A stretch of DNA of 64,000 bases, taken from positions 186,001-250,000 of the forward strand of contig JBLDXI010000003.1 of the NCBI GenBank assembly GCA_047495785.1, in the 5' to 3' direction. The translations under genes were made by a program, and so were the position numbers. Origin of the DNA: Lepidodermella squamata (taxonomy: Eukaryota; Animalia; Gastrotricha). How positions within the stretch are numbered: the first letter of the stretch is position 1; each line of letters begins with the position of its first letter. Below the pieces are notes generated by a model, which saw only the letters and a list, made by a program, of their open reading frames with translations, did no database searches and had not been told where the DNA came from. Below, piece after piece: positions 8,266 through 61,045 of the stretch.

Positions 8266-11200
8266 TTACATGACAGTAATCACAAGATGGAGATTGACGC
8301 CGACGATGGCTCCTAAAGCAACTAGAAAAGCCATGACATCGATGAGCCGCAGCAATGTGACTTCATATCTCCGTGCTACCATCGTTTTCGCCCCATACAA
8401 AAATCGTCGATAGCTTGCAGTATTACAAATGGCTGTTACAAGAATTTCGTAGATGGTGATAGCTGCTACAACCGCTGACAGCATTAGAACGTAATTCGTG
8501 TAAAGCAGCTGTTTCGAGGACTCAGAAACGCTGCTGAGAACATCAGATTGCGCTACGACCAGCGCTAGCATAACGGTCGAGCATAGGACAGGCCGATCCT
8601 CAACACCAGGCTCCATGAGTATCGATCCAAGGGCCAAAGCGATTAGCAAATAGCACGGTATAATCAAATTGACGACGTAGTACGTTGGATCGCGTTGGTA
8701 AGCAAGGATGATCTTGCCATAGGAAACAGGCGCCCCAGTTCGAGAGGGCGATGGACAAGTTCCCCGATACGTCTTTGAGTTAACCATGGTCCAAATTCCA
8801 TTGGAAAGGGATGCATAGGCTCGAACATAGACCCTAGCTATAGAAACATATGCAGCCGGCTCGTCCATCAAAAAGGTAAACTCGCATGTTTGCGAATCGA
8901 ATGGGAATTTTGTTAGATCCATACTGCAAGAAGATGCGAAAGTTCCGATCCGGTCCCAGTGGAAGAACAGCGTTCTATTGGGCCTCGAAGCGTAGTAGAT
9001 GATCTGAGTCTTTTCGCCATAATCTTGGCTGTTGAGATACACGCTTCTTGAAGAATTGGGCAGGGCTATTTTCGGCTTCCAGAAATACATGTTATCAGCC
9101 GGGATGATTCGTTCGTTCAAGTCAACGCCAGGCGCTGTGTAGGTTTCGCTGCAAGATTCGACCACCCATTGAGTTAGCAGAGAACCCCATAATGATATCT
9201 CCCTGGCAGCCTGGTCTATCTCGACTAGCTTTTCAATGGAGAAGGTCAAAAACAGGGATGTATTCATTTCGGGCGATCGGCGACTAGCTGCTATGTACGG
9301 GCATTTTTCAATGTCTTGAAATGTTACAGCTGGTTCGTAATTCCCGTCTATTGCATCGGGAATCGGAGACTTATCCAGAAACAGTAGCGTTTGGTCGGTA
9401 GGAGCCACTTCCGTTGTTTTGCTGCCCGATTTCCTTGTTGTCCTCCGCGAAGTTGAGGACGATATCGATGATGTCGACAATGGAGCTGCTGTCGGGGCAA
9501 TGCCATCACTTAGGAGCCAGAACAATCTGTAAATAGGATATTTATCTCACAGGGCTACAGAAATTATAAATCGGTTCTCACGCTTTTCGGATAGAAATGC
9601 TAGCATCTTGGGTGCCGAGGGCTAGCATTCCTAAGCACATGGCTCTCGAGAACGCGTTTGATCCAAAGCCGGGTACTGAAAGATTTTGAAAGCAGGCGTA
9701 AGATGGCGTAAGGCCTTGACCGGGCATCTTTGAAATTGAGATCTATATTAAAAAAAGAGGAAAATAATATTAAAACCCCGGGGATGCGAAATCCATAAAG
9801 GCTGTTCGATGTTCGACCATCAAATTAGTAACGACATATGGCTGAAAGACTGAAACAGCCAGCAACTAACGTTTATCTGGTCGTTCACATGTTGAACCGT
9901 GATTCGATAACTCGTGTTGCCATTTGAAGCGAAAAATCCTGCATCGCCACATCCAGGCAACGAAGGACTGCCTGTTGTTGGAGGTAATGAGATATTTGCT
10001 GTTCGATTTTCGTAATAAGCGGCGTAAATTTCTCCCCGATTAGCGGCTAGAACTTGCCAAATGCTAAAGCCGTACAACTCTGCTACGCCAGTTACTTCGT
10101 TAGTAGCATTGGACCTCGCTGAAACAAAACAAATAATTTCAATTAAGCATGGGATATCATGTATCTGTCGTATATAATCCAAGCCTCACCCCAGCTAGGA
10201 CTTGAGCCGCTTAAGCTGAAAGTCATGCCAAACCATGTCACAGATCCGTCTGAACTAGGTTTTACATCCAATTCAATCTCGAACCTCCAGTCTTTGAAGT
10301 AATTGTAGATCGGCTGATAAAAACATTATTTGCTTTTTTGCTTGGGAAAATAGCAAGCAAGCTCACATGCAGGTAGTAATTTGCAGATTGATATCCTGGC
10401 TTGATGAGCGAGTATGAATTTCCACCATTGTTAGATCCTATAAACCTAGTCGTTGATGATAACTCGCCGGTGTAGTCAGCGCTGACATAGCCTGCGTATC
10501 TCAAACTGCCGTAGTTGCTAGGAAGAGGCATCGCGTACAAATCAGGCTGCGGGGGCGAGTCCTCCGTCAATGCCCAGAAATACCTTAACATGAAAAAGTC
10601 AAACATGAATAAGCTAAACATGAATAAGCTAAAAGCTAAATAGCACTTAACTCATATGCAAAAACTTCTTGATTCGAATCCTAAAAATCAGATAATTACG
10701 AATATCGGCCTTCGACCTTAGACAGTTGACGGGGAACTCCCCGTTTTATAAGCGGGCATATCCTCATTGATGTACGCTCCGATTACCGAACGAACGAACG
10801 GACGAACGACGGAACACGGCCGACGACAACGGTGAGTTCCCGTCATAGCTTTTTGTGTACAATTCATGTAAATTCGCATTAGATGAAGGTAACTGGTAGG
10901 TAAATCATGAAAGGATCTGAAATTTATCCCAATATCACCCAATAGATTGTTACGCACATTTTCTTGAGAAGAGCATCTCCATTAGCTCCATTGACTCCGT
11001 AGAATCGCGGCCGCATAAGCCCCTGTGTCAATTGGTAGCCAATATAGTAGGTAAAACCTGAAAATGTAATTCTCGTTGAACAGGTTGGTCCACCAGAAAT
11101 CGGAACCGATGCAACCTGTGTATGCGGAAAATATTCCGGCTACTACGTCAAACCAAGAAGTTTATACCGTTAATACGTCAAGGGCGGTCTGAAAAATGAG

Positions 11201-13786: not shown

Positions 13787-16700
13787 CTAAACTGCCACGC
13801 CAATGTATAGATTGATACCCAACATAGCTTCAAGAGCCGCCATAAATGCAATTGTATCCACTAATCGAACGAATGAAATCCTGAACCTTCCAATGCTAAC
13901 AATTCTCGATAATAGCGCCTGTTGATCACGCTTTGAAGCTAGATTCGTCAGAATGATCTCATAGACCGTGATGGCTGCTACGACAGAAGATAACATGAGA
14001 ACGTAATTCGTGTATAGCAGCTGTTTAGAGGTCTCTGAAACGCTGTTCAGAACATCGGACTGTGCCACAACCAGCGCTAGCATAACAGTTGAACAGAGAA
14101 CAGGCCGATCAGGTACATCTGGTTCCATCAAAAACGAACCGAAGGCTACGATGATGAGGAGATAGCAAGGGATCAACAAGTTGACGATGAAAAAAGAAGG
14201 ATCTCGTTTGTATGTCAAAGCAATCTTCCCAAACGAAACAGGGTCTCCAGTTCGAGAGGGCGACGCGCAAGTTCCTCGACTCGATCGAGCATTCGTTAAG
14301 GTCCATATGCCGTTGGAAAGTGAATCGTAAGACTTGACGTAGACACCGCCGATGGCAACGTAACTAGCCGGCTCGTCCATTAGAAAAGTGAACTCACAAG
14401 TCTGAGAATCGAACGGAAATTTTGTCAGATCCAGTTTGCAAGCCGATGAGAAAGTTCCAATGCGGTCCCAGTGGAAAAACAACGTTCTGTTAGGCCGTGT
14501 TCCGTAGTACATGATTTGAGCCTTTTCCCCGTAGTGGTCATTACTCAAGTAAACATCAGTCGTTGAGTTTGGAAGGGCAATTTTCGGCTTCCAAAAATCT
14601 ATGCTAGCCACAGGAATAACCCGTTCTATCACCTCGGCATGAGGAGCTGTGTATTCAGCTGTACACGAGAGAACAGGCCATTGAACGAGAAATGAGCCCC
14701 AAAGCGATATTTCACTGTCAGCTTGGTCGATTGATACCAGTCTTTCTACGGAAAAGGTTAGATATATCGTGGAATTGACCTCAGGCGATCGGCGTCTAGG
14801 ATCGAGGTAAGGACAAGGTTGTAGGTCCTCATAGCGGACTAACGGCTCGTAGTGTCCATCGATTGGATTTGGTATTGGAGCTCTGTCATCTCCGTTCATT
14901 GTGAGATCAGATGAGAAAGTTACTCTTGTAGCTGGTTGCTCGGTCTCAGGAATCGAGTTAAGCATGTGACTGAGCGTTGTAGTAGTCTCACTAGCAACTG
15001 AAGTGGTCCCTGAACTAGTAAATTGCGAGATCATGCCTGACGAGGTAGTAGTTGCTGAGAAGGATAGGCTAGCGGATGATGTAGAACTGGTGGAGCTCGA
15101 CGATGTCGACGTCGGGGTCGGTGCTTCCCCTGCACTCAACTGCCACGCCATTCTAAAAATAAGTGAATAATATATGGCTAAGATCACTTTAGTATTGTTT
15201 TAAGCGTATACACTCTTCGAATCGCTACTAAATCTGGGCTGCCCAATCCCGTCAACGAGTATAGCATCTTTTTGTAAGAAGCTTCGCGGAACCCCGGAAC
15301 TGGGAAATTCTTGAAGCAATCGTATGTAGCCGTCAGTCCGTTGGCTGGCAGTTTCGCAACGGAAACATTGACGAAATCGTTAACAGCCTGGACAACAACG
15401 CGAAAACTCGCATTCCCGGATGTATCGAAAAAGGCCGAGTCACCGCATCCCGGGGATGAAGATATTGTTCCAGGTGGTGGCATCGTGACGTTGTCAGTTT
15501 TGTTTGGGTAATAGCCAATGTAAAACTCGCCTGTGTTTGGGAGAAGATTCTGCCAGATACCAAAGCCATAAAGGCTATTGACGCCATTAAAATCAGAAGA
15601 GTTCCCGATTTTAACTGAACATTTCAACGATATTAATATCAGGTGGCATAAGACTCGGGCTAACTTACTCCTCGAGGGGGAAATAAAGTCTTCATTAAAA
15701 ATCATGCTGAGCCATCCATGCGATCCTGTACCGCTGTATGAGACGTCAAAGTCGAATTCGATGCGCCAGTCATTGAAAACTTCGAAGTAGTACTGAAATC
15801 TTTCATTTTTCATTTTAGTTCTAATAAAAGCATATTGAATTACAGATGCTCCATAAGATTTCGAAGTTCCAGCTTTGTTAATGAGCGTGAGGCTTTTCGC
15901 AGCAGACACGGTAACTGGAAACGTAGTCCAGTTGTATTCTCCAGAGAAGTCGCAGCTGGCATAGCCGAAGAAGTTGGTCTTCCCAACGTTTTCTGGGAGC
16001 GCGAGTGTGTACAGATCTGCAATAGCCGGACTGTCTTCTGTGAGGCCCCACAAGTACCTGTAAAAAAAGAAGAATAGGTATGAGCCATTACTCACTTATC
16101 TAGGATCTCAATGGCTTCATTGAACAACGACGGAAAATATCGCGTTACTATTCTATTACAACGATTGAGACAAGATGCCAAGCGTTCAACTTACATTCGT
16201 TTCACGAGAGCTTCTCCAGCAACTCCGTTAACAGCGTAGAATATGGGTGCCGGGACGCCAAAGGTTAACTGTAACCCGATGGAGGCAAGGGTACCTATCC
16301 TTATTACAGTTGCACAACTTGCGCCAGAAGTAGGAACGGCCATCAACTTCGATTTGGGACAGAATATAATTAAGAATGATAACATATAGAAACCCGCTAA
16401 CTGTGATAACGTCAAACACGCTTTGATAGATCATGCGAAATTTTGCGACGCCTGACGATGACATGGCGCAACCGGAGTCAAATGAATACGTGGTCAATGA
16501 GACGTTGAAAGGCGGCGCTGTCGGAGTGCCATCATCCATGTAAGCCCTCCAGGTAATCACCATTTTGCCGCCGGATTCCAACTTGAGGAAAGTTATTAAA
16601 CCATAGCCGAAATATGCGAAAACGTCGTAGTAAGGCTTTCCCGGGGATGAAACATCTATAGAGCGAAATAGCTAGGAATTGTGTTTCATCCCCAATTAGA

Positions 16701-23473: not shown

Positions 23474-26400
23474 ATGCTCCGAGCAAGCTCTCTAATCTTG
23501 CTAGCAGTTACTACAGTTTATGCGGGTTACGATCCCACGCTGGATACTAACTCTTTGCAGCTTCCGATCGGCTACAAAGGGCCGCCGGTGTACCAGGCGT
23601 ATTGTTCATTCGACGGCGAAAATGCTCAGGTCAACAGCAATGCCTCGTTCATACCGTTGTACTCTGGTCGAAAAGTTGCGAATGGCTACCAACTAAATTC
23701 GATGGCAGCGGCAAACTCCTCGCCGAATGAATCTCTCGCTATTTTGCAGGGCCCCGTGAGTTATCTGGATACTACCTTTCCCTTATCGGTGTAAACGTCC
23801 AACTATTTTTTGATGCAAAGGTAGTGGGATTACGCTTAGAAAACTGGCGTTTGGAGTACGAAGTTGAGCTGCGATACAAAACTAATGGATCATCAAATGC
23901 CTGGTTCGGATTTGCATTAACGCTTAATGTCATGAGACCAAGTAAGTTCCTATACATCTCAAACTCATTCGCAAGCTCATTTCCCTGATCACAGATGTCT
24001 CATCTGCTTCTTCAACGTACTACGACGTTTTCACAAATTATGGATTCGGTACCGTGGCTTTTCTCAAGTTGGAACCGAATGGTAAAGTAGTGATCACCTG
24101 GAGGAGTGCTATGGACACTGGACCGCCTATTGCACCGCCCTTCAATGACACAACAAATCGGTTTACGTTTGACACAAGTTGTGTCATTTCCTCTACAGGC
24201 CTCGCTAAATTTCGTATGATCTACCAAAACGTCTTAGATTCTTTAACAGTTTGTGTTGAATTGATTGTCATATTGCGATGATTTTCTCAAATCTATTTCA
24301 AGGTGGCAGTGGTTCCTAGCTCTGGGGGAGCAGCATGTTCTACTGCTGTGATTTATGTCATGGGCTTGACTTACCAGATACTATACAACGTGATCATGCC
24401 TCGTTTCTACGCTATTAATGGAGCCGATGGAGACGCTCTCGTGAAACGCATGTAAGTAGACATTTTCTATAACTTCTGGGATATTAACCAATCAACGATT
24501 TGTGAAGTGTAAAAAGGTTCTTTTCAAATCCGTTAGCTTTGTAGCTATATTCTCTTTTCGTTAAGGTACTGGTGGGGTCTCACTGAAGACTCTCCGGCCA
24601 CTCCAGATCAGTACACCTTAGCCCTACCAGCTAACACTGGAACCACGACTTTCAGTGGTTATACAAGCTACGACTACACGGGTGAATACAATTTCACAAC
24701 CAAGCCTGTGGTGTTAACCGCTTCGAAAAACTATGAGCTAATCAGCAGCACTATCTCACCGAGACTGTTTGCAGATCAGGTAAGTGTATCTGTCCTCCTA
24801 TCAAGACGTTATATCACTGAGTGTATAATTGCAGTTTATTTTTAATTTCTTCGCCGACTGGCGCGTCGAATTCGACATCGAAGTGTCATGCAGCCTCAAT
24901 GGATCTCAAGGTTGGCTTGGCTTGATTTTTGGCCTGTCTGGGACTTACCCGAAAATAAGTGAGAATTTATTGAGACAAGTTCTGTTTTATCATCTGATTT
25001 TAGTAAAAATGGGCAATTCGTCTGATTTCAATGGCAACACTGACATTATTGGGCTCGGAATCTGGCAGAATCTTCTCCCAAACACAGGCGAGTTTTACAT
25101 CGGCTATTACCCTACCAAAACTGGCAATGTCACAATTCCGCCCCCTGGAACGATATCTTCATCCCCGGGCTGTGGGGATACCGCATTTTTTGATGCATCT
25201 GGTAGTGCAAGTTTCCGCATCGCTGTGCAGCATGTCAACGATTCGGTGAATGTTTCCTTGGCTAAACTACCAGCGAATGGAGCCATGGCTTCTTACGACT
25301 GCTTCAAAAACTTCCACGTTCCAGGATTCAGAGACTATGTCTACCGTAACTCGATGCTATATTCCATTTTCGGATTGGGTAGACCTAATTACGTCGCCTT
25401 TCGAAGAGCGTATTATTGGGCCCGTGAAGAATTATTTATAATTTCATTAATTTCATACTTTCAGAATGGTTTGGCGGTTGACTGAAGGACCGGCGCCCCC
25501 CTATTCAAGGTCAACAACACCTCTTACATCTACAAAATCCCCCGATCTTCAAACTTCTACCTGGCCTGAAATATCTAACTCAAGCTCAGAGTTATTTCTA
25601 GACGATCTTGGTGTAACTGATGCAAGTAAGGCTCCGATTCCTGACCCTTTGGATGGAAATTATGAACCAGCTGTCACTTACAAGGACCTAGAGACGTGTC
25701 CTTACCTTAATAGTGAACGGAGATCCCCTCAGGTGAACACGTCCATATACCTAACTTTCTCTGCTGAGAGGTTGGTGGCGATCGACCAGGTTGAGAGTGA
25801 GATTTCTCTATGGGGCTCTTTGCTAGTTCAATGGCCTATTCTTTCATGCTCCGCTGAATACACAGCTCCCAGTGCCGAAGTCACTGAGCGAGTGATTCCA
25901 GTGAGCAGCGCCACCTTTTGGCGGCCGAAAATTACACTGCCAAATTCTACGACCGATGTTTACCTGAGCAACTTCGGGGAAAAAGCTCAAATCATGTACT
26001 ATCCAACAACACCGAATCGAACAATTTTTTTCCACTGGGACCGAGTCGGAACCTTCTCGTCAGCTTGCAAGATGGATCTATCGAAATTCCCGTTTGATTC
26101 TCAGACCTGCGAGTTTACTTTCATGCTGGACGAACCAGCTACATTTGAAGCCATCGCGGGCGTCTATGTCAGATCCTATGATACACTTTCAAATGGCATG
26201 TGGACCCTGATGCATGCTCGAACGATGCGTGGAACTTGCGCATCTCCGAGTCGAATAGGAGCCCCTGTTTCCTACGGCAAAATCGCCCTGACATACAAAC
26301 GCGATCCAACTTATTTCATCGTCAACTTGATGATTCCTTGTTATCTTCTCATTTTCGTTGCTTTCGGTTCTTTCCTTATGGAGCCTAATGTTCCAGACCG

Positions 26401-26719
26401 GCCTGTTCTCTCATCAACTGCCATGCTAGCACTGGTCGTAGCTCAGTCTGATGTCCTGAGCAGTGTCTCTCAGAATTATAAACAGCTCTTGTACACGAAC
26501 TACGTTCTGATGTTATCCGCCCTTGTATCGGCCATCACCGTCTACGAGATTATAATGACGAATCTAACTGCTAATGAGCAAAATAAGCTCGTCTTATCAA
26601 AGCTGATAATAGTGAAAGGCCGAAAGATCTCTTTAATCCGACTTCTTGACATATTCGCGTTTTTGCTGGCTTTTGAAGCTCTGCTTGGGATTAACATATA
26701 TCTGTTCATGGCGATTTGA
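23474..26719 (+). CDS. Lectin-like-domain Cys-loop channel paralog D, 934 aa
   Basis: Exons 23474-23755, 23821-23941, 23995-24248, 24303-24451, 24566-24779, 24835-24958, 25004-25409, 25465-26719. All introns are GT-AG and the exons total 2805 nt in one open frame. Cys-loop CKMDLSKFPFDSQTC. Confidence 0.92.
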
Positions 26720-32604: not shown

Positions 32605-33005
32605 CATCTAACGTGTCATTCTTCCTCTCATTTCCGTGAAATTCCGTTTAATTGCGAGCGGATGACGGCTTTTTTAAAAATTGGCGAACGAATGTTGCCA
32701 CGATTGACGAGAAACGCCTCAACCCGTCCTAGAAACGTATTCAAAAAGTAGAAAAATACGTGACGATGACAGAGAAACTAGCTGTAAATCGTAAAAGCTG
32801 TGAGCGACGGTTTACATCTATTTTTTTCTGTCATCGTCACGTATTTTTCTTAAATTGGCGAGCCCTATCGGCCCCGTAGTTTTTATAGCAAATTTTCGTG
32901 TATCTGATTCAGCGGGTAGCCGTTGCTGTTTATTATAAAAAGCTCGCGGCTTAACGGCAGCAAGTTTACCTCTTTTATTCTCATTAAATATTTCCTAGCA
33001 TTGAA

Positions 33006-34143
33006 ATGCAACTGAACAAGATTACTTCACCAACACTCTTGCTCGTGCTGAGTGTTGGCTGGACTCTGACAATTCCGAAAGGTGAGTTCTTCTCGTTGTC
33101 CTCCTTTCCCGAGAAAAATGAAAACTTTGCTCGCAGTGCAATGCAGTTGTGATTACGACGATTACGGCTGTGTACCAGCGCAACCTCCAAGGCCTCCCGC
33201 TCCGGCGGCAACACCTCCTCCTAGCCCTTGCGCGGCACAGCTATTCGGCGCAGATGGTCAACAAATCCTTCGCACAGTTTTCATCAACGAAAAGGCGGAG
33301 ATGCCGCAATTAATTGCCAAGTGCCTGGACAGCAGAAACAACCTGGTGAGTACAAACTGGCAACTCACTGTGTCGCCGACTCGGGATTGCAACACCATCG
33401 TCTGGACAGGAGAGTGGACTGGACCGGCTGGACACAGACAGAAGGTGTACAGGGAGGGATGCCCGACCTTGACCAAGACGTCGTCGGGCGGCATTTGGTT
33501 CATCCACACAGCTCTGTCGGGAGCTGACATTCGAGGCGGCGATGCAGTTCTGTCCTACTCGTCCGGCGGCACCATGACGCGAGTTGTTTCCTTCACGATC
33601 CTGGCCGTCAATCCACCGACCGCCGATGTCAGAGCGGAAATCGTTCGCCTCGCTGGTCCTAGGCTGTGGTACGCTCAATACCTTGCCGAGCACGAAAGCG
33701 GCCTGCAGCAGGTGAGAATTAACTACTGCCCAAAAGTGTCGTATGACAAGGGCTTCGGTGTTGGCCAATTGACGAACCCACCGCCAACGTGCGCCCAGAT
33801 ATGGAGCTGGAAAGAGAATGTTGCCCAGCTAGTCGTGATGTTGCGAGGATACGCGTCTTCGGCTGCTTCTTTCATGCGAACTGAACGAGGAAAAGCTGGC
33901 GGGATAGCTGTTCCGAGCCAGATGTCCGGCGGTTGTTATTTCGCAGACGGGACAGACAGAACCATTGAGGACGCTGTGGCTATGAAAATGTACAACGGCA
34001 GGTCGTGCAACAACAACACAGATCCTTTCCGGAAAATTTGCAACTACGTTGATTGGAGCGAGTCGAAGCAAAAGTGGGATTTTCATCCGACTAATATTCT
34101 TAAATTCGACTACGTCGGCAGAGTCTGCGCCTTGGTTGGCTAA
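33006..34143 (+). CDS. Secreted lysozyme-like/lytic transglycosylase-like protein, 360 aa, 2 exons
   Basis: Exon 33006-33081 (signal peptide MQLNKITSPTLLLVLSVGWTL) plus exon 33137-34143, phase-1 GT-AG. Pro-rich linker; motifs AEHES, GFGVGQLT, W..KEN, MYNG. Confidence 0.7.
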
Positions 34144-35382
34144 GGAAACGAATTTGAACATTCGCTCGTAATAATAATTTTTATTATAACTCAAGCAACT
34201 CATCTTCCTAAAAACTTCCTTATAACTCAAACCATTGAATTGGAATATTGGCATTTTCATTTATTTCATCTATAATATTGGGAAAACGTGGATAGGACGT
34301 GTTGAATGACTGTTTTTTTCAAAACCTGAGATCTATTGCTATGGGCCCGCAATCTCTGTTGCTCCCTGGAATGGGCTGAGATTTAGTGCATCAAAACAAT
34401 AAATTTGCAATTTTTATTGATCATACAATCGTCAGCTTTTTATTAATTCATATAAAGTGATGCCTCGCTGGGTGCCGCACCTCCACAGCTTGCAAGGTAG
34501 TCTCAAACGATTTTACATTCGGTTCAGTTAAGTAGTGATTACTCCTTCGTTCAACGATGGCGTTCTCAAGTTCGGCTCGATAGGCTGGTATTGCCTTGTC
34601 AAGTCAACGGAACCGCCCCTGTTTCGCTTTCAAACCCATGACGTAAGAGCTACGATGGACCTGCCATGCAAACGTCGCCGTTGAGATCTTCTCCACCAAA
34701 TTTTTCAAAATTGAAACCTGTTTCGTGCTATCAGCGATTACGGTCGCCAAATTCGGAGGCAGGTGAAAATTCGGATTTCAATAGCTATCGCGTCTATGGA
34801 GATTTCAGAGGTTCAGAGACATCCGAAGATCATCTGAAACGATGTTTTAGCTCACAAATATGTCTCGATACGTCCTAAAAATCTAAAATCCTTGAGTTGT
34901 TATATTTTTCCGGTTTGGAGAGTGCCCAGAATTCGAAATTCCATGATTTAGCGTCGTTAGGCAGCATTTTTTGCCAATCCAGCATTTCACAGTAGACAGT
35001 CTGTATGCTTTTATTTTTGAGAAAAATATCAGAGAACTCCACGCGACTTCTCATCCCCAAGCCAAACAATTCTGGTCTGGGTAGTGAGGTACCTAGCAGC
35101 ATTGCCATTCTTGCGAACGTCACGTACCGAGTGAGTGCGAGTTCAATTTCAGTGCGCCATAAATATTAAACAGACGAACTCATACGATGAAGTCATACAA
35201 AACCAGCACAGAAGGAGCTTTAGAACTGCAAAAATGTATGCCGAACTCAGATTGTTCCTGTCTGAGACGCCATGAGTTCGAAACGACTACCCTTAAAGTT
35301 ACCTGACAATTTATAATTTATCAGCATGATGAATAAAACCGACCGCCGCAGCTTTTTGAGCTGCAGTCAGAAATTTCGCAAC

Positions 35383-38300
35383 ATGCTTCGAGCAAACTCT
35401 CTAATCTTGCTAGCAGCTATGTCCGCATTAGTTTGCGCAGGTTATGATCCCACCCCGGATACTGACCCGTTGCAGCTTCCGATCGGCTTCAAAGGGCCGC
35501 CAGCCTACCGTCCGTATTGTTCATTCGACGGCGAAGATGCTCAGGTCAACAGCAATGCCTCGTTCATAACACACTACTCTGGTCGGAAAGTTGCGAATGG
35601 CTACCAACTCAATTCCATGTCAGCGGCAAACTCCTCACCGAATGAATCTCTCGCGATTCTGGAGGGTCCCGTGAGTTATATGAATTCTAACTTCCCTTTT
35701 ATTCGCGAGAATAATATATGAGCGAAATAACCAAGGTGAATTGTCAACTTTCCTTTTATTAATAGGAAGTTGGATATTACTTGGAAAACTGGCGTTTAGA
35801 GTACGAAGTTGAGCTGCGATACAAAAATAATGGATCATCAAATGCCTGGTTTGGATTTTCATTAACGTCTGAACGCATGAAGCCAAGTAAGCTTCCTAAA
35901 GATTAAAGACCACACACCAAGCCCCTGCTCACAGATTTCTCATCTGTTTCTTCAACGTACTACGACGTTTTCTCAAAATATGGATTCGGTATCGTGGCTT
36001 TCCTCAAGCTGGAACCGAATGGTAAAGCAGTGATCACCTGGAGGAATTCTATGGACACTGGTCCGCCTGTTGCGCCGCCCTTCAATGACACAACAAATCC
36101 GTTTACGTTTGACACAAGCTGTGTCATTTTCTCTACAGGCGTCGCTCAATTTCGCATGATCTACCAAAACGTCTTAGATGCCTTAACAGTTGGTGTTGCC
36201 TTAATAGAATTGATTGTCAAATTGCGATGATTTTCTCAAATCTATTTCAAGGTAGCAGTGGTTCCTAGCTCCGGTGGAGCGGCATGTTCAACTGCTGTGG
36301 TCAAGTTCGCAGGCTTTGGATACCAGATGCTATACGGCGTGATCATGCCTTGTTTCTACGCTATAAATGGTGCCGATGGAGATGCTCTCGTGAAACGCAT
36401 GTAAGTAGTCATTTTTTATAATCTGGGATACTAACCAATCAAAGGTTTGTAAAGGGTAAAAAAGGCTCTTTTCAAATCAGCAAGCTTTGTAGCTATATTC
36501 TCTTTTCGTTAAGGTACCTATGGGGTCTCACTGAAGACTCTCCGGCTCCTCCAGATCATTACACATTAGCCCTACCAGCTAACACTGGAACAACGACTTT
36601 CAGCGGTTCTACAAGCTACGACTACACGGGTGAATACAATTTTACAACCAAGCCTGTGACGTTAACCGCTTCGAAAAACTATGAACTGATCAGCAGCACT
36701 CGCTCACCAAGACAGTTTGATATATCGGTAAGTGTATTCATTCTATCAAGACGTTACATCTCTGAGCTCTGAGTGTATAATTGCAGTATTATTATCATTT
36801 CTTCGCCGACTGGCGCATCGAATTCGATATCGATGTGTCATGTAGCATCAATGGATCTCAAGGTTGGCTTGGCTTGGTTTTCGGCCTGACTAAGATTTAC
36901 CCGAAAAGAAGTGAGAATTTATCGTGACAAGTTCTGTCTTAGCATCTAATTTTAGTAAAAATCGGCAATTCATCTGATTTCAATGGCATCAGTGACCTTA
37001 TTGGGCTGGGAATCTGGCAGAATTTGATGCCGAACAGAGGCGAATTTTACATCGGCTATTACCCGAACAAAACTGACAATGTCACAATGCCGCCCCCTGG
37101 GACGGTATCTTCATCCCTGGGCTGTGGTGATACCGCATTTTTCGATGCATCTGGGAATGCACGTTTCCGCATCGTAGTGCAGCATGTCAACGATTCTGTG
37201 AACGTTTCCTTGGCTAAACTACCAGCGAATGGAGCCATGGCTTCTTACGACTGCTTCAAGAACTTCCCCGTGCCAGGATTTAAAGACTATGTCTATCAAA
37301 AGTCCATGCTATACTCGATTTTCGGATTGGGTAGTCCTAATTATGTCGCCTATCGAAAAGCGTATTATTGTCCCAGTAGAAAATTACTTATAATTTAATC
37401 AACTTCTTCCAGAATGGTTTGGCGGTTGACTGAAGGGCCGGCGCCCCCCTATTATTCAAGGTCAACAACACCTCTTACATCTACAAAACCCCCCGATCTT
37501 CAAACTTCTACGTTGTCTAACTCAGAGTTATTTCAAGATGATCTCGGGGTAACTGGCACAAGTAAAGCTCCGATTCCTGACCCTATGGATGGAAATTACG
37601 AACCAGCTGTCAATTATAAAGACCTAGAGGCGTGTCCGTACCTTAACAGTGAACGGAGATCCCCTCAGGTGAACACGTCAATATATCTAACATTCTCCGC
37701 AGAGAGGTTGGTATCACTTGACCAAGTTGAGAGTGAGATTTCTCTATGGGGATCATTGCTAGTTCAATGGCCCATTATGTCATGCTCCGCTGAATACACC
37801 GCTCCAAGTGCTGATGTCACTGAGCGAGTGATTCCGGTTAGCAGCTCGAACTTTTGGCGGCCGAAAATTACATTGCCGAATTCTACGACCGATGTTTACC
37901 TGAGCAACTTCGGGGAAAAAGCTCAAATCATGTACTATCCAACAACACCGAACCGAACTCTGTTTTTCCACTGGGATCGCGTTGGAACCTTCTCCTCAGC
38001 CTGCAAGATGGATCTATCGAAATTCCCGTTTGACTCTCAAACTTGCGAGTTCACTTTCTTGCTTGACGAGCCGGCAACATTTGAAGCTATAGCTGGCGTC
38101 TATGTCAGGTCATACGATTCACTTTCAAATGGCATGTGGACCCTGATGCATTCTCGGACGATGCGTGGAACTTGCGCATCTCCGAGTCGAATAGGAGCAC
38201 CCGTTTCCTATGGCAAAATCGCCCTGACATACAAACGCGATCCAACTTATTTCATCGTCAACTTGATGATTCCTTGTTATCTTCTCATTTTCGTTGCTTT

Positions 38301-38655
38301 CGGTTCTTTCCTTATGGAGCCTAATGTTCCAGACCGGCCTGTTCTCTCATCAACTGCCATGCTAGCACTGGTCGTAGCTCAGTCTGATGTCCTGAGCAGT
38401 GTCTCTCAGAATTATAAACAGCTCTTGTACACGAACTACGTTCTGATGTTATCCGCCCTTGTATCGGCCATCACCGTCTACGAGATTATAATGACGAATC
38501 TAACTGCTGATGAGCAAAATAAGCTCATCTCGTCGAAGCTGACAATAGTGAAAGGGCGGAGGATCTCTTTCATCCGACTTGTTGACATGATCGCGTTTTT
38601 GCTGGCTTTCGCAGCCCTGCTTGGAATTAATATCTACCTGTTCATGGCGATATGA
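35383..38655 (+). CDS. Lectin-like-domain Cys-loop channel paralog F (recent duplicate of D)
   Basis: Same 8-exon structure as D, open throughout; upstream 34550-35135 matches 22460-23110. Confidence 0.92.
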
Positions 38656-39462: not shown

Positions 39463-42400
39463 TTAGACAGCCATGCACAAATAGATATTGATTCCCAGCA
39501 AAGCTTCGAGCGACACCAGAAAGGCGAAAATATCGACTAATCGAATGAAGGAGATCCTGCGGCCAACCACATTCACGATTCTTGAGAATAGCGACTCGTA
39601 GTCAGAGATAGCAGCTAGATTCGTCATAACGATTTCGTAAACCGTAATAGCTGCTACGACAGAGGAAAGCATGAGAACATAATTCGTGTATAGCAGCAGT
39701 TTCGAGGTCTGCGACACGCTGCTCAGAACATCAGACTGAGCTACGACTAATGCCAACATGATCGTTGAACACAACACTGGCCTATCAGCGACATCAGGTT
39801 GCATGATGAGAGAACCAAAAGCGAGGGCAATAAGAAGGTAGCAAGGAATCAACAGGTTTACAATGAAAAAAGCCGGATCTCGTTTGTAGGTCAGGGCGAT
39901 CTTGCCATATGATACAGGAGCTCCTGTGCGAGAGGGCGATGCGCAAGTTCCTCGAATAGTCCTCGCATTAACCAGTGTCCACATGCCATTTGAGAGAGAA
40001 TCGTAAGACTTTACATAGACACCGCCAATGGCAACGTAGCTAGCGGGTTCATCCATCAGAAAAGTGAACTCACAAGTTTGAGAATCGAACGGGAATTTCG
40101 ATAGATCCATCTTGCATGCTGACGAGAAGGTTCCGACCCGGTCCCAGTGGAAAAACAAAGTTCGATTCGGCGTTGTTGGATAGTACATGATTTGAGCCTT
40201 TTCGCCATAGTTGTCGTCCCTTAAATAGACGTCAGAAGTTGAGTTTGGTAGCGCAATTTTCGGCTTCCAATAATCATCGCTGACGACAGGAATGACCCGT
40301 TCTGTCACTTCAGCATCAGGAGCTGTGTATTCAGCGGCGCACGAGAGAACAGGCCATTGAACAAGCAAGGAGCCCCAAAGGGATATTTCACTCTCAGCAG
40401 GATCGATTGACACCAGTCTATCAACTGAAAAGGTTAGATACAGGATAGTGTTTAGTTCAGGAGATCGACGCTTTGCTCTCAGGTATGGACAAGGTTTCAG
40501 GTCCTCGTACTCGACCAATGGCTCGTAATTCCCATCCAGTGGATCAGGAATCGGGGGTTTGCCATCATCTGTCTGCGTGAAATAGGATGGAAAGGTTGAA
40601 CTGGTAACTGGTTGCTCGGTCTCAGTGTTCAAGTTTGGCTTTGAAAAAGCTGAAGTGGCAGATGCAGTGGCCGAAACTAGCGGTGTCGTGATAGATGGGG
40701 TCGTGCTTTTTGAAATCAAACTTGTTGATAAGGAAGTCGTGGTCGACGTAGAGATCGCTGCTTCCCCTGCGCTCAACCTCCACGCCATTCTAAACATAAA
40801 TTAGCCTTGTCTACAAGATGGTGATTTCTTTGTTGTAGTAAGCATACATTCTTCGAATAGCAACCAAATTCGGGCTTCCCAATCCTGCTAACGCGTAATA
40901 CAGTGCTTGCGTGTAGGTAGAGTCACGCATCCCGGGAACTGGGAAGTTTTTGAAACAATCATAAGCAGCTGCTAGTCCGTTGGCTGGCAGTTTCGCAACG
41001 GAGACATTGACGAAGTTGTTAACAGACTGCACAACGATGCGAAAACTCGCGTTTCCGGATGCATCGAAAAACGCCGAGTCGCCGCATCCCGGTGCTGAAG
41101 AAATTGTCCCAGGTGGCGGCATCGATACGTTGTCAGTTCTATTTGGGTAATAGCCGATGTAAAACTCGCCTGTTCCCGGGAGAAGATTCTGCCAGACGCC
41201 GAAGCCATACAGGTTGTTGAAGCCGTTAAAAACCGTGGAGTTGCCGATTTTTACTGAAAATTATTTCGTAATAATGAATGTGAACAACACTCTGCAAAAC
41301 CTACTCCTCGAAGGCGCACCGGTGCCAATATTGAAAATCAAGCTGAGCCATCCCTGCGTTCCAGCGCCACAGGATACGTCAAAATCGAACTCGATGCGCC
41401 AGTCATCGAAAACATAAAAGTAGGACTGAACTTCCATTATTAAATGTCAGTCATATTTAAAAAATATACCGTGGGTAAATACGATTTCGCAATTCCTGAT
41501 GTGTCGGTGAGCGTATAGCTCTTTGTCGCATACGAGGTAACAGGAAATGTAGTCCAGTTGAACTGCTCGGTGAAGTCGCGGCTTCCATAGCCGAAGAAAT
41601 ATGTCTTTCTAAAATTGTCTGGTGGTGCGAGTGTGGACGAATCCACGGTGGCTGGACTATCTTCTGTGAGACCCCACATATACCTGGAAGACATAATAAA
41701 TGTAAATAATATGCTACAGAACCTAAATGACATTTACGGTCAATGGATTTGACAATATTTCACACCTAACAATACCGAGGGCTTTGCGTGTATTCGAAAT
41801 GGGCTTCAAGAATTAAGAATTAACTCTAATTCCTATTTTCAAGAGGGGTTTCTTGGCGTATTCTGTGAAAAAGCCTAAAAATGCTGCTAACTTCTCTTGT
41901 TTAACTGTTTAACCCTTTCATGGCGGAATTATTTATCTGTGGGAGAAAAATATTCGATGGCAATTCTATGAATTTTTAAAGGCCCTGATCACGATTTTGA
42001 AATCCGTTTGTCTTTATCTATCACCGTTAAGGGTGTACAAATACTGGCCGAAATCGTCCTATCCGCCCAGCTGATTTTTCGAGTATATACCCTAATTTTT
42101 GTGTAAGGTTCCTTCACTTATGGAATCTTAGATTCTAAATTACTCCCATCAATGTCCCTAAGATTCTCCCTCACTTATATCACCAAAAAGATTCATTTAA
42201 AAAAGTTCACATCTGAATTCAGCTTTTCGAGATTTTTCAGATTTCAAGATAACAGTTTGCTGATCTCGAAACCTTGTAGCCAACATCGAAAAGCAACGTT
42301 CTTCAAAGGGGCGATCGAGAATTCCCCAAATTCAATTTTGTGCACATTTTCAAAGTCGAAATTCCGAAATGGACCTTCCCGCCGTGAAAAGGTTCAATTG

Positions 42401-52382: not shown

Positions 52383-53654
52383 TCAGCACGACTTTTGTCT
52401 GCATCTTCCACCGCGCTCTTTGAGCAACGCAAGAACGTCATTGCGATTTTTCCAGACCGCGTAGTCCGACGCTGTCCATCCTTCGTTGGTTGCTGCGTCG
52501 ACATCAGCACCACGTTCAACAAACAGCTTGACGAGGTCGAGGTGGCCCAGTTCAGCCGCCATCGTCAGCGGTGTGGCTCCCGTGTCTCGCCTGCTGTCGA
52601 CCGCTGCTCCTCGATCGAGCAGAAGTCTCGCGACAGCCAACCGGTCAAATTGGGCCGCATAGTACAACGCCGTGAGACCTTGCTTAGTCTTGCTATTGAT
52701 ATATGCGCCGTGATCCAGCAGCAGCTTGACAACGTCGAGGTGCCCTGTCTCTGTCGCAACGATCAACGGTGTGGCTCCCGTGTCTTGTCTGCTGTCAATG
52801 GCTGCTTCTCGATCGAGCAGCAGTCTCGCAACAGCCAATCGGTCATTCTGGGCCGCACAATACAAAGCTGTGGCCCCTTGCTTAGTCTTGCTGTTGATAT
52901 CTGCGCCGTGATCCAGCAGCAGTTTGACGACGTCGACGTTCCCGTTCTCTGCCGCGATAATCAATGGCGTGTATCCGATGTCGCGCCTACTGTCGACGGC
53001 TGCTCCTCGGTCAAGCAACAGCTTCGCAACAGTCAATCGGTTAGTTTGGGCAGCAAAGTACAACGCTGTGCAGCCGTGGTTAGTCTTGCTGTTGACGTCC
53101 GCACCGCGATCGACAAGCAGCTTGACTGAGTCTAGGTGTCCATAGAAAGCTGCTGTTATCAACGGCGTACCCCCCTCGATGTCTCTGCTATCCACGGTTG
53201 CTCCTCGGTCAAGCAAGAGCATCGCAACGGCCAATCTGTTGTTAACGGCTGTTCTACACAAAGCCGTGATGCCATTTTTATCTTTATTGTCAACATTTGC
53301 GCCGTGATCGAGAAGCAGCTCAACCACAGCTGAGTGGCCTTGGCTCGCTGCTAGATGCAACGCTGTGAATCCCGATTCGCCCTCGTGGCTATTGACATCT
53401 GTCCCCAGATCAAGCAATAGGCAGGCAATTTCAGCCCGCTCATCAGACTTGTACCAGCAATTAGCCACGCGATGCAACACATTGAAATTGCTAATATTGT
53501 AAACGCACATGGTGTCCCTGGTCGGATCACGCCAGTTCGGGTTGAACTTGCCGCCCGTCGCCTCTTTGATCTCACCGACAATTCGTCGCACCCTCGCAAC
53601 GTCAGCGTCAGCACCTGCTTGGCTCAACTTCTTGTACAGCTCAAGCACAGCAGG
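52383..53654 (-). CDS. Ankyrin-repeat exon (~11 repeats); 5' end unresolved
   Basis: Canonical GxTALHxAA / GxTPL..AA..GH..VVKLLLDxGA repeats. The ORF has no ATG start and a strong acceptor at 53655. Confidence 0.85.
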   Translation of the reverse strand, partial: PAVLELYKKLSQAGADADVARVRRIVGEIKEATGGKFNPNWRDPTRDTMCVYNISNFNVLHRVANCWYKSDERAEIACLLLDLGTDVNSHEGESGFTALHLAASQGHSAVVELLLDHGANVDNKDKNGITALCRTAVNNRLAVAMLLLDRGATVDSRDIEGGTPLITAAFYGHLDSVKLLVDRGADVNSKTNHGCTALYFAAQTNRLTVAKLLLDRGAAVDSRRDIGYTPLIIAAENGNVDVVKLLLDHGADINSKTKQGATALYCAAQNDRLAVARLLLDREAAIDSRQDTGATPLIVATETGHLDVVKLLLDHGAYINSKTKQGLTALYYAAQFDRLAVARLLLDRGAAVDSRRDTGATPLTMAAELGHLDLVKLFVERGADVDAATNEGWTASDYAVWKNRNDVLALLKERGGRCRQKSC

Positions 53655-54138
53655 CTGTGAAAGTAGTGAAGTGAGAAAAGAAATTGTGAATAGTGACTCA
53701 CTGGTTTCACGGTACAAATCTAATGTTGGGGATTGATAGTTACAAATTATTGACGTTCATTCTTAAGTATGGGCCTGAAGGCCACGTAATACAGGAATCA
53801 CTGGTCGATGCCGCATCTCGCTCAGCGTATCAATGAATTTCGACCGTTTTACCCCACATTTTTAACAAACCTCATAATATGCAGTGAACAGGAAGCAAAG
53901 ACGATGGAAATAAGCGGATCAATGGTTATCGGTTAATCAGCGCCCGCAATTAATCTTGTCAACGAGCAGAAATTGTCAATGGGTCTCAAATTAGGTTCAA
54001 TTTAGGTCAGGTTGATAGGTATAATTATAACCACCCGTAAATGCGTTTCGGGCACCTTTCGAATCGGCTGCGCTGGTGCCAGTGTCCGATTGCGACGTCT
54101 TCAGACTTAATATATCAGGGCCATGAGAAGAAACTCAC

Positions 54139-57100
54139 TGCGTAAGTGCGCGGATTTGGCGTAGTTGTTGTAGTGATTCCTGGTGAGAATAACCATGTTG
54201 CAGCCTTTTCGCTTCAAGTATCAGAGCTTACGTATATCACAACTTGCACCCGTCCAGCTGTTCGTACAAGTGCATGAGTTCGGAGCCGAGCAGTAGCCAT
54301 CATTTGAGCATCGCGGTTCGCATATTGCTGAGAATTAGAGCGAACTTTGGAATTTTCGCAGAGTAATAGTTGTATCATATTAACTCACGAGTATCGCAGC
54401 TAATACCTGTCCAGCCTGATTGGCAAGCACATCGGTTGGGACCAGAACAATGGCCACCATTTAGGCATCGCTGGATGCAAGAGGCTGCAAATCGTCGATA
54501 AGACGAAACAGGAAATTGATAGTTTGTGGTTGAAAATTGAAGATGTTGCTTACGCGTGCTACAGTCGGAGCCAATCCATCCATAAGAGCAACTACACGAA
54601 TTCGGCGCCAAACAGTAGCCGCCATTTTGGCATTGTGGCTGACATGAAGCTGCAACATGACAAATAATGCCATATTAAGCCTGACATCAACTTTCTCCTC
54701 ACGTGTGTCACAGGTTTGACCAGTCCATCCACCTGTGCAGGAACAAGTATTAGGCCCGGAGCAGTGGCCACCGCTGCGGCATGGCAGATCGCAAACCGCT
54801 TGATAAACAAACATCACCGCAATGCATGGCATAATAAGTTTTTTAATTCTGCTTATTCCTATACCAAGCACCAAGCACTTAACCCTGAAACCCCCTTTAA
54901 AACATTCTTTCGGATCAAATCATAGACAATGGAACTATTACTCACATAAATCAAAACCTACGTGTGCCACAATCAAAACCACCCCACCCTCTGGGGCAAC
55001 TGCATGTATTCGGAGCCTCACAGGAGCCACCATTTGAGCATTGCTGGTTACATGTAGCTGCGAGGATGCAAAACGTGTCCCATTGGGCGCGATTACAATC
55101 TTTGTTGCTACTCACGTGTGTCGCAATCAGAGCCACTCCAACCTCGCCTGCAGGCACACGTGTTGCGTGAAGCGCAAGTTCCGCCGTTTTTACAGCTTTG
55201 GATGCACGAAGGAGGCTAAAATATGCCAAATTCAGCGATTGTTTTATATCAGTTATAAATCACCTCGGAGATGCACCGACCGAGCTCGGGCTTCCAACCA
55301 TTTTGCCGATCGCACACTGATTTCGCAGAGCCATTTGCAACGACAAACCCTTCGTCACAACGAACTGATACAGATTTGCCGGGTTTTAACGAATCGTCCC
55401 CACGCATAGTTTTGCTTTCCTCATCGACTATCGCTCCATTAGCCATAGCAGGTATCTTACAGTAGTCTGAAAACAGAAAGTGGCGACGCCGATGTATCTA
55501 AAAAGATTGGAATTGAAAGTACATTTCAGTTCATTTTCCACACATTGCCCTGTTTCCGACCATTCATCATCTTCGAGACACGTTATCTTGTTGGTTCCAA
55601 CGAGTTCATACGGCGGAACGCAGTCGAAAGTAACACTTCTGCCAACTAATATTGGAAACTTCGATTCCACCCGCAGCTTCGCATTGGATGGTACCGGAGC
55701 GTCAGAGCAATCTGCAAAATAAGTAGGAAGCATAAAAGTCAATTGAGATATCCCATGAGTGCTACTCCACTTATGTAGTCTGGCTAGACTGTCCTGTCAC
55801 GGCGTTACTACAGTATAGAGGATTTTAACAATTTTGTTGTGAACATAGAAAATAGCATGCTGACCGATTGTATTGCCGAGAATAGCGAAGCTGACGATAT
55901 ATAGAATAACACATTTTTTGAACCTTGAATAAGAAAGTGTTAATAGAGCTGGAATGGAATGCTTAAGGTCGTAGAAAATTAGAATATAATCATAAAACCA
56001 ACAGTTCGGAAGGCAGTTGCCTTTCTGCAGCCAAGTTCCATTCTCAAGACATTTCATTGCGGCGACGCCATCGATTCGGAATCCGGGTAAGCAATCGAAA
56101 AATACTGTCGATCCGATAACTAATGGTCCCCCATTATCGTCAGATTCCGCAATGCCTCCATTTGCAGGCACAGGAATAGGCATCTCGCAGGCTGTGAAGG
56201 TTGAGATTTAGTTCGAACCCTAGTAAAGTTGAAAAACTCACCTTTAGCGCAAACGCCTTTGGTTAGCCATGCTTTTGTCTTTGAGTCGAACCGCACTTCC
56301 CCAGCTCCAAAAATTGCATACCCGTCGTCGCAGACAAACTTTCCGACGCATGCATCGTCCGAGTAGCTAATTCTGCCGTTTTCGATGAAGTTAGGCTGTC
56401 CCCTTGATGCTAAAATATTATTTGAACACGTAATAGTTTGCCAAACAACATTAGACTTTCATAATTGGGCGGACAGAAATTAATACCTAGCAACGAATCA
56501 GGTACGGATCGCTCGGGGATGCAAGGGTTAGATTGCTCTGAGGCGTGGTTTTTGCATTTTTCGAAATTGGATAGCACATCAACGACCGCGTTGAAGCCGA
56601 GGGCCGTCGCAAACATCAACGGCGATTCTCCTTTCTCATCCGGTTTGCAGGTTGCATTGTATTTACTCAACAGCAAATCAACCAAAGGTGCGCAGTTCTG
56701 ATTCACGGCGATCCACAGCAAGTTCTTACCCAGCGGGTTTTTCATCGCAAGAGCCCATTGCAGATCCTCTGCTTTCAGACGAGCGAGCGTGGAATCGATC
56801 GATTTGATTCCACTGTCCAAACAATTGACAGATTGGTGCAGCCAGGACCGGCCATGAGAATCAGGCTTTAGGAGGACACTAGGGTCGGCAGCCATCAATG
56901 CTTGGGCAAGTTCAGATTTTCCAGGCTGCATAGCTAACGACAGCGGTGTTTCACCTTTTTTGTTCTGCACCCCTGACAGCTTCTCGGCATATTCAATCGA
57001 TAGAACTCTTTGCAGCAGGTCAAGATTGCCGCTTTGAACAACAAGATGAAGTGCTGTATCGCCAGTTAGCTCATTTACGGCTTTGATCAATTCGCCGTTT

Positions 57101-60051: not shown

Positions 60052-61045
60052 ACTCGGTATAATGCAGATTTCGTTAATAGTTTTCAATGTTCAACAACAA
60101 TAATGAAACAAGATGTAAGGGTGTTCTAGTCAAAGAGCAAGGCATCACATCGTCATATATCAAATACTTATCAGATTAAGAATTGTTTTAGATTAATAAT
60201 CTGAAGCGAGCGTACCTAATGAAATCCGTCTGCTAGATGTGTACCAGCGATTAGAGCACTGCTTCTAATTTTACAATGCAAATCGCACGATTTCTAATTT
60301 AGCGTTTTTTCACTTAGAACGCGTGCGTTTTTCTAATTCGCATTTCTAATTCACTTAGAACACGTGCGTTGTTCTAATTAGCGAATTAGAACACGCACGG
60401 TTTTTTATTGCGCGTAATTACTCATTCATAAAACAGCAACGCATTTTTACGCACAGCAATAATTTCACATTTTTATTGCACACACAAAACGCTGTTAATA
60501 ACCGAGGCGATAGCCGAGGTTACCAAAGGCGAGCGCAGCGATGCCTTTAAAATAAAACGAGGCGAAGCCGAGTCTAGTAGTGAAAGGCGAGTGAAGCGAG
60601 CCTGGAGGAGACGTTGAAACGAGTCGAAGCAAGAGTGGAACGAGGCGCAGCCGAATGTAACGAGTGCGCAGACGAGTTTCACCGTTTTCCATTCTTTTAA
60701 GCCACTTTTCTGCCTGCTGTTTATTGAACGTAGTATCGTCAAGCGAGTGACTCATTCTTCGCGTGGCCAGTGCAAAATTATTACCCTCAATAAAACACGC
60801 ACACACCAGTGTTAGCAATAATGCAATAATGCGAGCGTGGCACAACTTGCACGAATTTCGCATTGCTAGTTGCTAGGCGCAGCGATTTCAGTAAATTGGC
60901 TTCGCTCTCAAAGGTGGTCATAATTTCGATGAGCTGGGCATGGTCGGCGAGGTACTAGTTGATGCCTCACTTCAAGCAGAAATTTGATTGAAATGAAGTG
61001 AAAAAACTCGCGTAACTCAGTCCCTGAAAATTAGAAGCCGTGCTC

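Follow-up and report, generated by a model that had tools for sequence, protein, structure and literature searches.

Bacterial cell-wall hydrolases that have been adopted by animals are known already, and so is the GH23 fold of goose-type (g-type) lysozymes and lytic transglycosylases. The Dae amidases of ticks and mites derive from bacterial Tae effectors, and GH25 muramidases have been transferred across domains. Horizontally acquired cell-wall hydrolases have also been described in ladybirds (PMC7807722), and horizontally acquired NlpC/P60 proteins in Trichomonas (PMC6299479). Here, we analyzed a window of 64,000 nt from the gastrotrich Lepidodermella squamata (GenBank assembly GCA_047495785.1, contig JBLDXI010000003.1, positions 186,001 to 250,000, forward strand). 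At window positions 33006-34143 (+) it contains a two-exon gene, in which a 55-nt intron with GT..AG borders is predicted between a signal-peptide exon and a 1007-nt body (exon 2). According to the structural model, the product carries a divergent GH23-like enzyme domain with an intact catalytic Glu, fused to an immunoglobulin-like (Ig-like) module. The gene is the fourth member in this genome of a protein family that is itself unmodeled, uncharacterized and spread over meiofaunal phyla.

Like the acquired hydrolases of other eukaryotes, the family combines a putative bacterial peptidoglycan-degrading domain with a signal peptide, introns and gene duplication. It differs from the Dae amidases, the GH25 enzymes and the NlpC/P60 proteins in its GH23-like enzyme class, in its presence in several animal phyla and in having an animal-specific, membrane-anchored form. 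No description of the family was found in the literature. A horizontally transferred 'lytic transglycosylase' gene of the rotifer Adineta vaga is reported in PMC12220480 and may belong to the same family.

Family Search and Conserved Motifs

All searches and structure predictions were performed with exon 2 or parts of it, and the joined exons were used only in a script that checked the reading frame and the N-terminus. The window protein had no Pfam match at E ≤ 1, and no model in Pfam, NCBIfam or PHROGs matched the protein or its bacterial and animal relatives. The SLT model (PF01464), which also covers the animal g-type lysozymes, matched none of 72 family members at E ≤ 0.1 and, at E ≤ 1, nothing in the whole genome. 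A previous reading of the locus from its sequence alone (the sequence-only reading) had placed the protein outside the c-, g- and i-type lysozymes of animals, and this was borne out by the failure of PF01464 on both the protein and the genome. When applied to four bacterial genomes with a member of the family, the same model detected canonical SLT genes distinct from it in three of them. In the animal genome, GH23-like genes may be limited to the four copies of the family.

A word-indexed homologue search with exon 2 returned nothing. An exhaustive search of 1.84 billion representatives returned 313 relatives at E ≤ 1e-3, 69 of them at E ≤ 1e-10, and judged by these values the similarity within the family is far above chance. 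The matches covered approximately residues 108-333 of exon 2 and were often located at the C-terminus of far longer proteins. The C-terminal half of the window protein contains three motifs: an E-S pair (AEHESG, with the Glu codon at 33694-33696), GFGVGQLT and MYNG. An alignment of 72 domains (A1) showed no variation at the Glu of HES or at either Gly of the Gly-x-Gly motif, and conservation of at least 90% at the Gln and at the Asn of YNG. The Glu of AEHESG, followed by Ser, closes helix 95-103 of the structural model.

A profile search of the Protein Data Bank (PDB) sequences gave four matches at E ≤ 10. Three g-type lysozymes came first (E 0.046-0.13), followed by a weaker match to DSCAM that fell on the beta module. 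The family HES aligned with the catalytic RES Glu of the cod g-type lysozyme (3gxk), and the family GfGifQ aligned with GFGLMQ in all three g-type lysozymes. When compared by hhalign with three canonical SLT domains from bacteria, the family aligned in the same register, with HES on the SLT 'RES' Glu, at a probability of 20%. In g-type lysozymes, the water molecule for hydrolysis is held in place by additional acidic residues, the equivalents of GEWL Asp86 and Asp97. The Asp of SYDKGFG in the window protein aligned with the Asp of GDNYNGFG in the cod enzyme and is the majority residue of the family at this position, but it is not invariant. Two database labels pointed in the same direction as the alignments: the first named cluster retrieved with ESM features was 'lysozyme G-like', and the UniRef name of the homologue from Panagrolaimus was 'Transglycosylase SLT domain-containing protein'. 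As the family fails the Pfam SLT test, we describe it as GH23-like at the level of the fold and not as a member of PF01464.

Predicted Structure

AlphaFold2 (AF2), when supplied with the 72-sequence alignment, modeled the last 250 residues with a predicted local distance difference test score (pLDDT) of 90.5 and a predicted template modeling score of 0.88. The model obtained from the single sequence was uninformative (pLDDT 35.7). The alignment-based model consists of a beta-sandwich (model residues 1-72) followed by a helix-rich domain. Together with homology, it places an N-terminal, all-beta, Ig/FN3-like beta-sandwich at 33277-33606 and, together with the alignment, the GH23-like catalytic domain at 33607-34140 of the window.

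The model was compared with 48,161 chains by VIA-align. The top five matches were all GH23 proteins, with Z-scores of 9.0-10.1 and 119-134 residues aligned: MltC (Z 10.1, root-mean-square deviation (rmsd) 3.0, 128 residues aligned), MltF (Z 9.9), Slt (Z 9.9), the salmon g-type lysozyme 4g9s (Z 9.4, rmsd 3.1, 130 residues aligned) and MltE (Z 9.0). Further transglycosylases ranked next, along with lysins of phages and a GH23 chitinase. The GH23-type matches fell on model residues 75-250, which places this part of the AF2 model in the GH23/lysozyme-like superfamily at the level of the fold. The sequence-only reading had predicted an SLT-style lysozyme-superfamily domain with a conserved catalytic Glu, and the alignment, the PDB profile search and the VIA-align comparison all agree with it.

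The beta module matched FN3 and Ig domains at Z ∼5. Homology with a tardigrade protein (P0001) begins at approximately residue 47 of exon 2, and bacterial models in the ESM Atlas share the whole two-domain shape (TM 0.76 over 223 residues). The Ig-like module and the catalytic domain are conserved together in animals and bacteria.

Among the described enzymes, g-type lysozymes (cod 3gxk, salmon 4g9s and GEWL, 153l) resemble the window protein in fold, in the alignment of the catalytic Glu with that of 3gxk, in the aligned GFGLMQ/GfGifQ motifs, in the Asp preceding this motif and in being secreted animal proteins. In contrast to these enzymes, the window protein has Thr in place of the Asp of QVD, and the family always carries an N-terminal Ig-like module, has a C-terminal beta-hairpin region of greater length and is not recognized by the Pfam SLT/g-type model. 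Its non-animal relatives are bacterial, and the sequences do not tie it by descent to the g-type lysozymes of vertebrates and molluscs. The sequence-only reading had held the protein to be unlike g-type lysozyme, which applies to its position outside the Pfam model but not to the solved sequences, the closest of which are g-type lysozymes, if marginally (E ∼0.05). The family-1 lytic transglycosylases (Slt70, MltC, MltE and MltF; PF01464) provided the best structural matches (Z 8-10) and share with the family the three-motif logic of E-S, G-x-x-Q and Y-N-x-G as well as the hhalign register; they differ from it in that no hidden Markov model matched and in the low hhalign probability.

Proposed Activity

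The gene probably encodes a secreted, peptidoglycan-cleaving enzyme. From the N- to the C-terminus, the protein would comprise a signal peptide, a Cys/Pro-rich linker, the Ig-like beta-sandwich and the GH23-type, lysozyme-like catalytic domain. Its predicted activity is to cleave the peptidoglycan of bacteria at the beta-1,4 bonds of the glycan backbone; the invariant HES Glu would be the general acid, the role of the catalytic Glu in lytic transglycosylases and goose-type lysozymes. The enzyme may serve in antibacterial defense or in the extracellular digestion of bacterial food; both the substrate and this biological role are inferred. With one auxiliary Asp aligned and the other position occupied by Thr, the chemistry may be that of a hydrolase or that of a transglycosylase.

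Several results weigh against this proposal. The similarity to characterized GH23 enzymes is marginal (E ∼0.05 and an hhalign probability of 20%), and the Pfam SLT model misses the family. The second acidic position of g-type lysozymes, the Asp of QVD, is Thr in the window protein (QLT). The Z-scores of ∼10 are only moderately above the background of 7-8 quoted for the tool, and Foldseek alone found no significant match to the model in the PDB. The model also matched the GH23 chitinase 3w6b (Z 7.2) and a GH124 cellulase (Z 8.6), so the fold does not fix the substrate.

These last matches bear on an alternative that we consider unlikely, namely that a secreted protein of the same fold cuts chitin or another beta-1,4 N-acetylglucosamine polymer and acts in the remodeling of cuticle, eggshell or jaws or in feeding on fungi. 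The chitinase, from Ralstonia, is joined by MltE in complex with chitopentaose (4hjy) and by the cellulase among the matching structures, and the family includes a membrane-anchored long form, which is not usual for an enzyme that only kills bacteria. Chitinous structures are made by all of the animals in which the family occurs. However, the top structural matches, at Z 9-10, act on peptidoglycan, the nearest PDB sequences are g-type lysozymes, and no chitin-binding module was found in the Pfam scan. Cleavage of peptidoglycan is the reading that we prefer.

Gene Model

The longest open reading frame (ORF) of the region spans 33082-34143 (+; 353 codons). Exon 1 (33006-33081, +) begins at position 33006 with the first in-frame ATG past a stop codon at 32985-32987; it comprises 25 codons with the signal-peptide-like N-terminus MQLNKITSPTLLLVLSVGWTLTIPK and ends in codon phase 1. 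The reading frame of exon 1 is not that of the long ORF, and a script-based frame check showed that excision of 55 nt joins the two exactly. The predicted intron (33082-33136, +) begins with the donor AAAG|GTGAGT at 33082 and ends at 33136 with the pyrimidine-rich acceptor CTCGCAG|TG. Exon 2 (33137-34143, +) is uninterrupted and terminates in TAA.

The exon 2 product opens with a Cys/Pro-rich linker, QCSCDYDDYGCVPAQPPRPPAPAATPPPSPC. The low-complexity region coding for it (QCSCDYDDYGC...PPRPPAPAATPPPSPC in translation) occupies 33137-33276 (+), and no homologues of it were found except a spurious Pro-rich repeat protein (P0003). A TATA-like element, TTATTATAAAAAGC, at 32932-32945 (+), ∼65 nt 5′ of the start codon, is a possible core promoter. 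The sequence-only reading had described a spliced signal-peptide exon, an intronless body, a Cys/Pro-rich linker and the three motifs at these positions; its coordinates and this anatomy can be read directly from the sequence, and the observation as it was stated is confirmed. The spliced signal-peptide exon also upholds its view of the product as a secreted-type protein.

A 28-nt inverted repeat with 96% complementarity (32750-32777 and 32823-32850) and a 45-nt spacer is located ∼155 nt 5′ of the start codon. A contig of the read set X2, which is described below, folds back at this repeat (32750-32850). It could be a small foldback element resembling a miniature inverted-repeat transposable element, or an artifact of the X2 assembly.

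Transcription and Integration into the Host Genome

The gene is present in two independent read sets, X1 and X2. The X1 contigs matched the gene at 100% identity and spanned only 33232-34358, that is, exon 2 and ∼215 nt past the stop codon, with the flanks uncovered; the stop codon and a 3′ untranslated region of at least 215 nt were placed at 34141-34358 (+) from these contigs. One X1 contig had a loose end, AGATGAAGCAGTGGTATCAAC, containing what we take to be the beginning of the SMART cDNA oligo. The gene is likely transcribed. On the opposite side, the classification of X1 as RNA is the guess of a tool only, and the contigs begin at 33232, inside exon 2, which leaves the splice junction and the 5′ end outside the cDNA cover.

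Run X2, from another study and under another organism label, spanned the whole stretch, as genomic DNA would. It differed from the window at three coding positions, 33901 (Gly>Arg), 34015 (Asn>Asp) and 34139 (Gly>Asp, the last residue), which correspond to variable loops or the C-terminus; over the next 260 nt, seven substitutions and a deletion of 1 nt were counted. All three coding differences are non-synonymous, and they give no positive sign of purifying selection, which is a point against the proposed reading of the gene. A pattern of non-synonymous differences only resembles that of fast-evolving immune effectors; with n = 3, the differences are too few for a test, and between paralogues with a protein identity of 43% the synonymous sites are saturated.

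The GC content of the gene (54.8%) and its GC content at third codon positions (GC3; 60%) are inside the range of the host genes, for which an ankyrin gene (GC 53.9%) and HSP70 (GC 56.9%, GC3 74%) were used for comparison. The gene lies on a contig of 4.56 Mb, between animal Cys-loop and ankyrin genes. Because of its host-like GC and GC3, the length of the contig and its animal neighbors, the gene is not contamination. The contig, the spliceosomal-type intron, the host-like GC and the two read sets are all as expected of an integrated gene in the case of horizontal transfer.

Animal and Bacterial Relatives

Three paralogues were found in the same genome (G000), with 43, 41 and 36% identity to the window gene, which brings the total to four copies. 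One of them (L002) is located on the same contig at a distance of 3.6 Mb and is an intronless, secreted form with an unspliced signal peptide. Another (L003; G000:C43, minus strand, L003:1489-3598) is a long form that combines a membrane anchor at the N-terminus with a Cys-rich domain and the two-domain unit.

Names were looked up for 30 homologues, and the named animal members among these 30 were confined to two tardigrades (Paramacrobiotus metropolitanus and Hypsibius exemplaris), the nematode Panagrolaimus sp. PS1159 and the rotifer Adineta vaga. One homologue is on a contig of an NCBI assembly, where its gene is split by two introns. Further homologues are on AT-rich contigs whose neighboring genes are split by introns, and these cluster with Adineta in the tree. 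The long architecture, composed of the anchor, an 'FPNGS' region, the Cys-rich domain and the two-domain unit, was present in tardigrade, nematode and rotifer proteins as well as in L003. Among ∼180 homologues, it was restricted to the animal clade; it also occurred in many unnamed metagenomic proteins and in no bacterial member. The sequence-only reading had set broad metazoan orthologues against its own proposal. Animal homologues do exist, but their distribution is patchy, not broad.

The non-animal relatives that could be placed taxonomically were all bacterial, and they are accessory, extracellular proteins. Acidobacteria bacterium Mor1 is a named bacterial homologue, and a scan of bacterial genomes with an 18-row alignment found members in Victivallaceae, Zixibacteria, Verrucomicrobiota (including the isolate Haloferula chungangensis) and Hydrogenedentota, at identities of at most 36%. 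The bacterial members belong to at least five phyla and have many architectures, in which the two-domain unit is always C-terminal; the long bacterial proteins carry PKD, BACON, TSP3, Big_5, InlB-repeat and laminin-G modules. Within the phylum containing the Haloferula and Victivallaceae genomes, seven of 201 sampled genomes had a match, and the family is an accessory gene in that phylum. The ESM Atlas clusters nearest to the query were 96-100% bacterial.

At two loci of the Victivallaceae type, the homologue is followed by a gene for ∼345 residues (L012:6690-7730 and L006:1489-2517), with overlapping stop and start codons. The two partner proteins are 36% identical to each other (E 1e-66), have a signal-peptide-like start and belong to no Pfam family. 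The partner is a candidate immunity or inhibitor protein, which would point to an antagonistic role of the bacterial enzyme.

Phylogeny and Origin

In a FastTree phylogeny of 169 rows, the animal and animal-type sequences formed a group of 38 rows with a support of 96, and the named bacterial genomes were all in its sister group. Further clades, which were not placed taxonomically, branched outside. In an IQ-TREE phylogeny of 78 rows (LG+C20 PMSF), a single branch separated the animals from the named bacteria (bootstrap 51, SH-aLRT 99), and the named bacteria stayed together in 200 of 200 bootstrap trees. The window gene and L002 were sisters (100/98), and the pair grouped with the two tardigrade proteins as well as with the intron-bearing homologue L027 and an unnamed protein, P0004 (95/82). 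The rotifer-type sequences formed a separate clade. On these trees, the window gene is a lineage-specific, young duplicate and sister to L002.

Most probably, the family is an ancient acquisition of animals from bacteria and not one made by this genome alone. Such a transfer would predate the split among the four paralogues and be common to other phyla. We infer its direction: a transfer from bacteria to animals is the most economical because the bacterial members are spread over a wide range of phyla and architectures, because bacteria and phages dominate the fold and because the distribution in animals is patchy. Against this stand the unrooted tree, the weak bootstrap of the animal/bacterial split (51, versus an SH-aLRT of 99) and the fact that most of the database homologues are unnamed metagenomic proteins.

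An ancestral eukaryotic family, with an ancient vertical history, from which bacteria acquired their copies or which was shaped by massive loss alone, is improbable. The unrooted tree leaves the animals on one side of a branch and not demonstrably nested, and the family is sparse in bacteria too (7/201). This origin is opposed by bacterial members in at least five phyla with varied architectures around a constant C-terminal two-domain unit, by the FastTree clades outside the group of animals and named bacteria (although these were not placed taxonomically), by the 96-100% bacterial composition of the nearest ESM Atlas clusters, by the overwhelmingly bacterial or phage membership of the wider GH23 fold and by the restriction of the named animal members to four meiofaunal lineages among the 30 names.

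The sequence-only reading had proposed a horizontal acquisition. The bacterial affinity of all placeable non-animal relatives speaks for it, but any acquisition was neither private to this genome nor recent, as there are four paralogues and homologues in tardigrades, a nematode and a rotifer, with the animals on one side of the tree. In its narrow form, a recent bacterial transfer into this genome alone, followed by the gain of an intron and a signal peptide, is highly improbable. It would accommodate the missing matches to Pfam and to animal lysozyme families, the bacterial placeable relatives and the intronless gene body. However, the paralogues share 36-43% identity with the window gene, the nearest relatives are animal in both trees (the paralogue of the same genome and the tardigrade proteins), the top identity to any bacterial genome is 36%, and GC and GC3 are host-like.

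For the course of an old transfer from bacteria, we tentatively suggest one possible scenario. A bacterial Ig-like plus divergent GH23-like hydrolase may have entered animals a single time and later acquired the animal-specific, membrane-anchored architecture. Its present range would be confined to microscopic animals of limno-terrestrial habitats, most of which tolerate desiccation (tardigrades, bdelloid rotifers, panagrolaimid nematodes and the host animal), either because it was lost repeatedly elsewhere or because it passed from animal to animal. The family would then be a private lysozyme class of these animals, and the secreted copy in the window a recent derivative.

Genomic Neighborhood

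The neighbors of the gene are Cys-loop channel-like genes. A domain scan gave weak Neur_chan_LBD matches in them and nothing lectin-like. Five intronless, divergent channel-like copies are present in the window, at 8266-9525, 13787-15187, 25466-26719, 37414-38655 and 39463-40797, and they are part of an enormous expansion throughout the genome. A profile of these five copies gave 2003 first-look candidates in the 121 Mb of the genome. Of the matches scored, 99 of 99 were full-length, single-ORF and at E ≤ 1e-80, and ∼20 of them were on the contig of the window, at 138-584 kb (G000:C3:137911-583824). With the Pfam Neur_chan_LBD model, 2530 candidates were found genome-wide. As there is about one channel copy per 60 kb, adjacency to one is uninformative, and we attribute the proximity of enzyme and channels to chance or to a side effect of local duplication.

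The sequence-only reading had called the channels lectin-like and had suggested a locus that both releases and senses cell-wall glycans. That the enzyme and the channels form such a functional unit, with the receptors sensing what the enzyme releases, is barely credible: the gene does sit inside a channel-like array, and its sister L002 is flanked on either side by channel-like ORFs no more than 10 kb away, but neighbors of this kind are expected by chance at ∼2000 candidates genome-wide, the paralogues L003 and L004 have no channel ORFs within 20 kb upstream and 10 kb downstream, the channels have no detected lectin domain, and gene order in eukaryotes rarely implies function.

Two further features were observed in the window. 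A 263-codon ORF at 4481-5272 (-) contains a TNP-like RNase H C-terminal domain (PF21789, E 2.5e-5) and is probably a transposase remnant. Three large ankyrin-repeat ORFs are located at 52383-60087 (-).

Significance

The suggestion of a glycan-sensing locus is removed for this window, and automatic 'alien gene' calls in this genome are better read as old, shared acquisitions. If active, the enzyme would be a fourth kind of lysozyme-like protein in animals, beside the c-, g- and i-types, that is missed by current libraries. The family adds a bacterial cell-wall-degrading domain adopted by animals that is common to several microscopic phyla and not limited to one lineage. Because it is shared across phyla, the age and the route of such transfers become testable.

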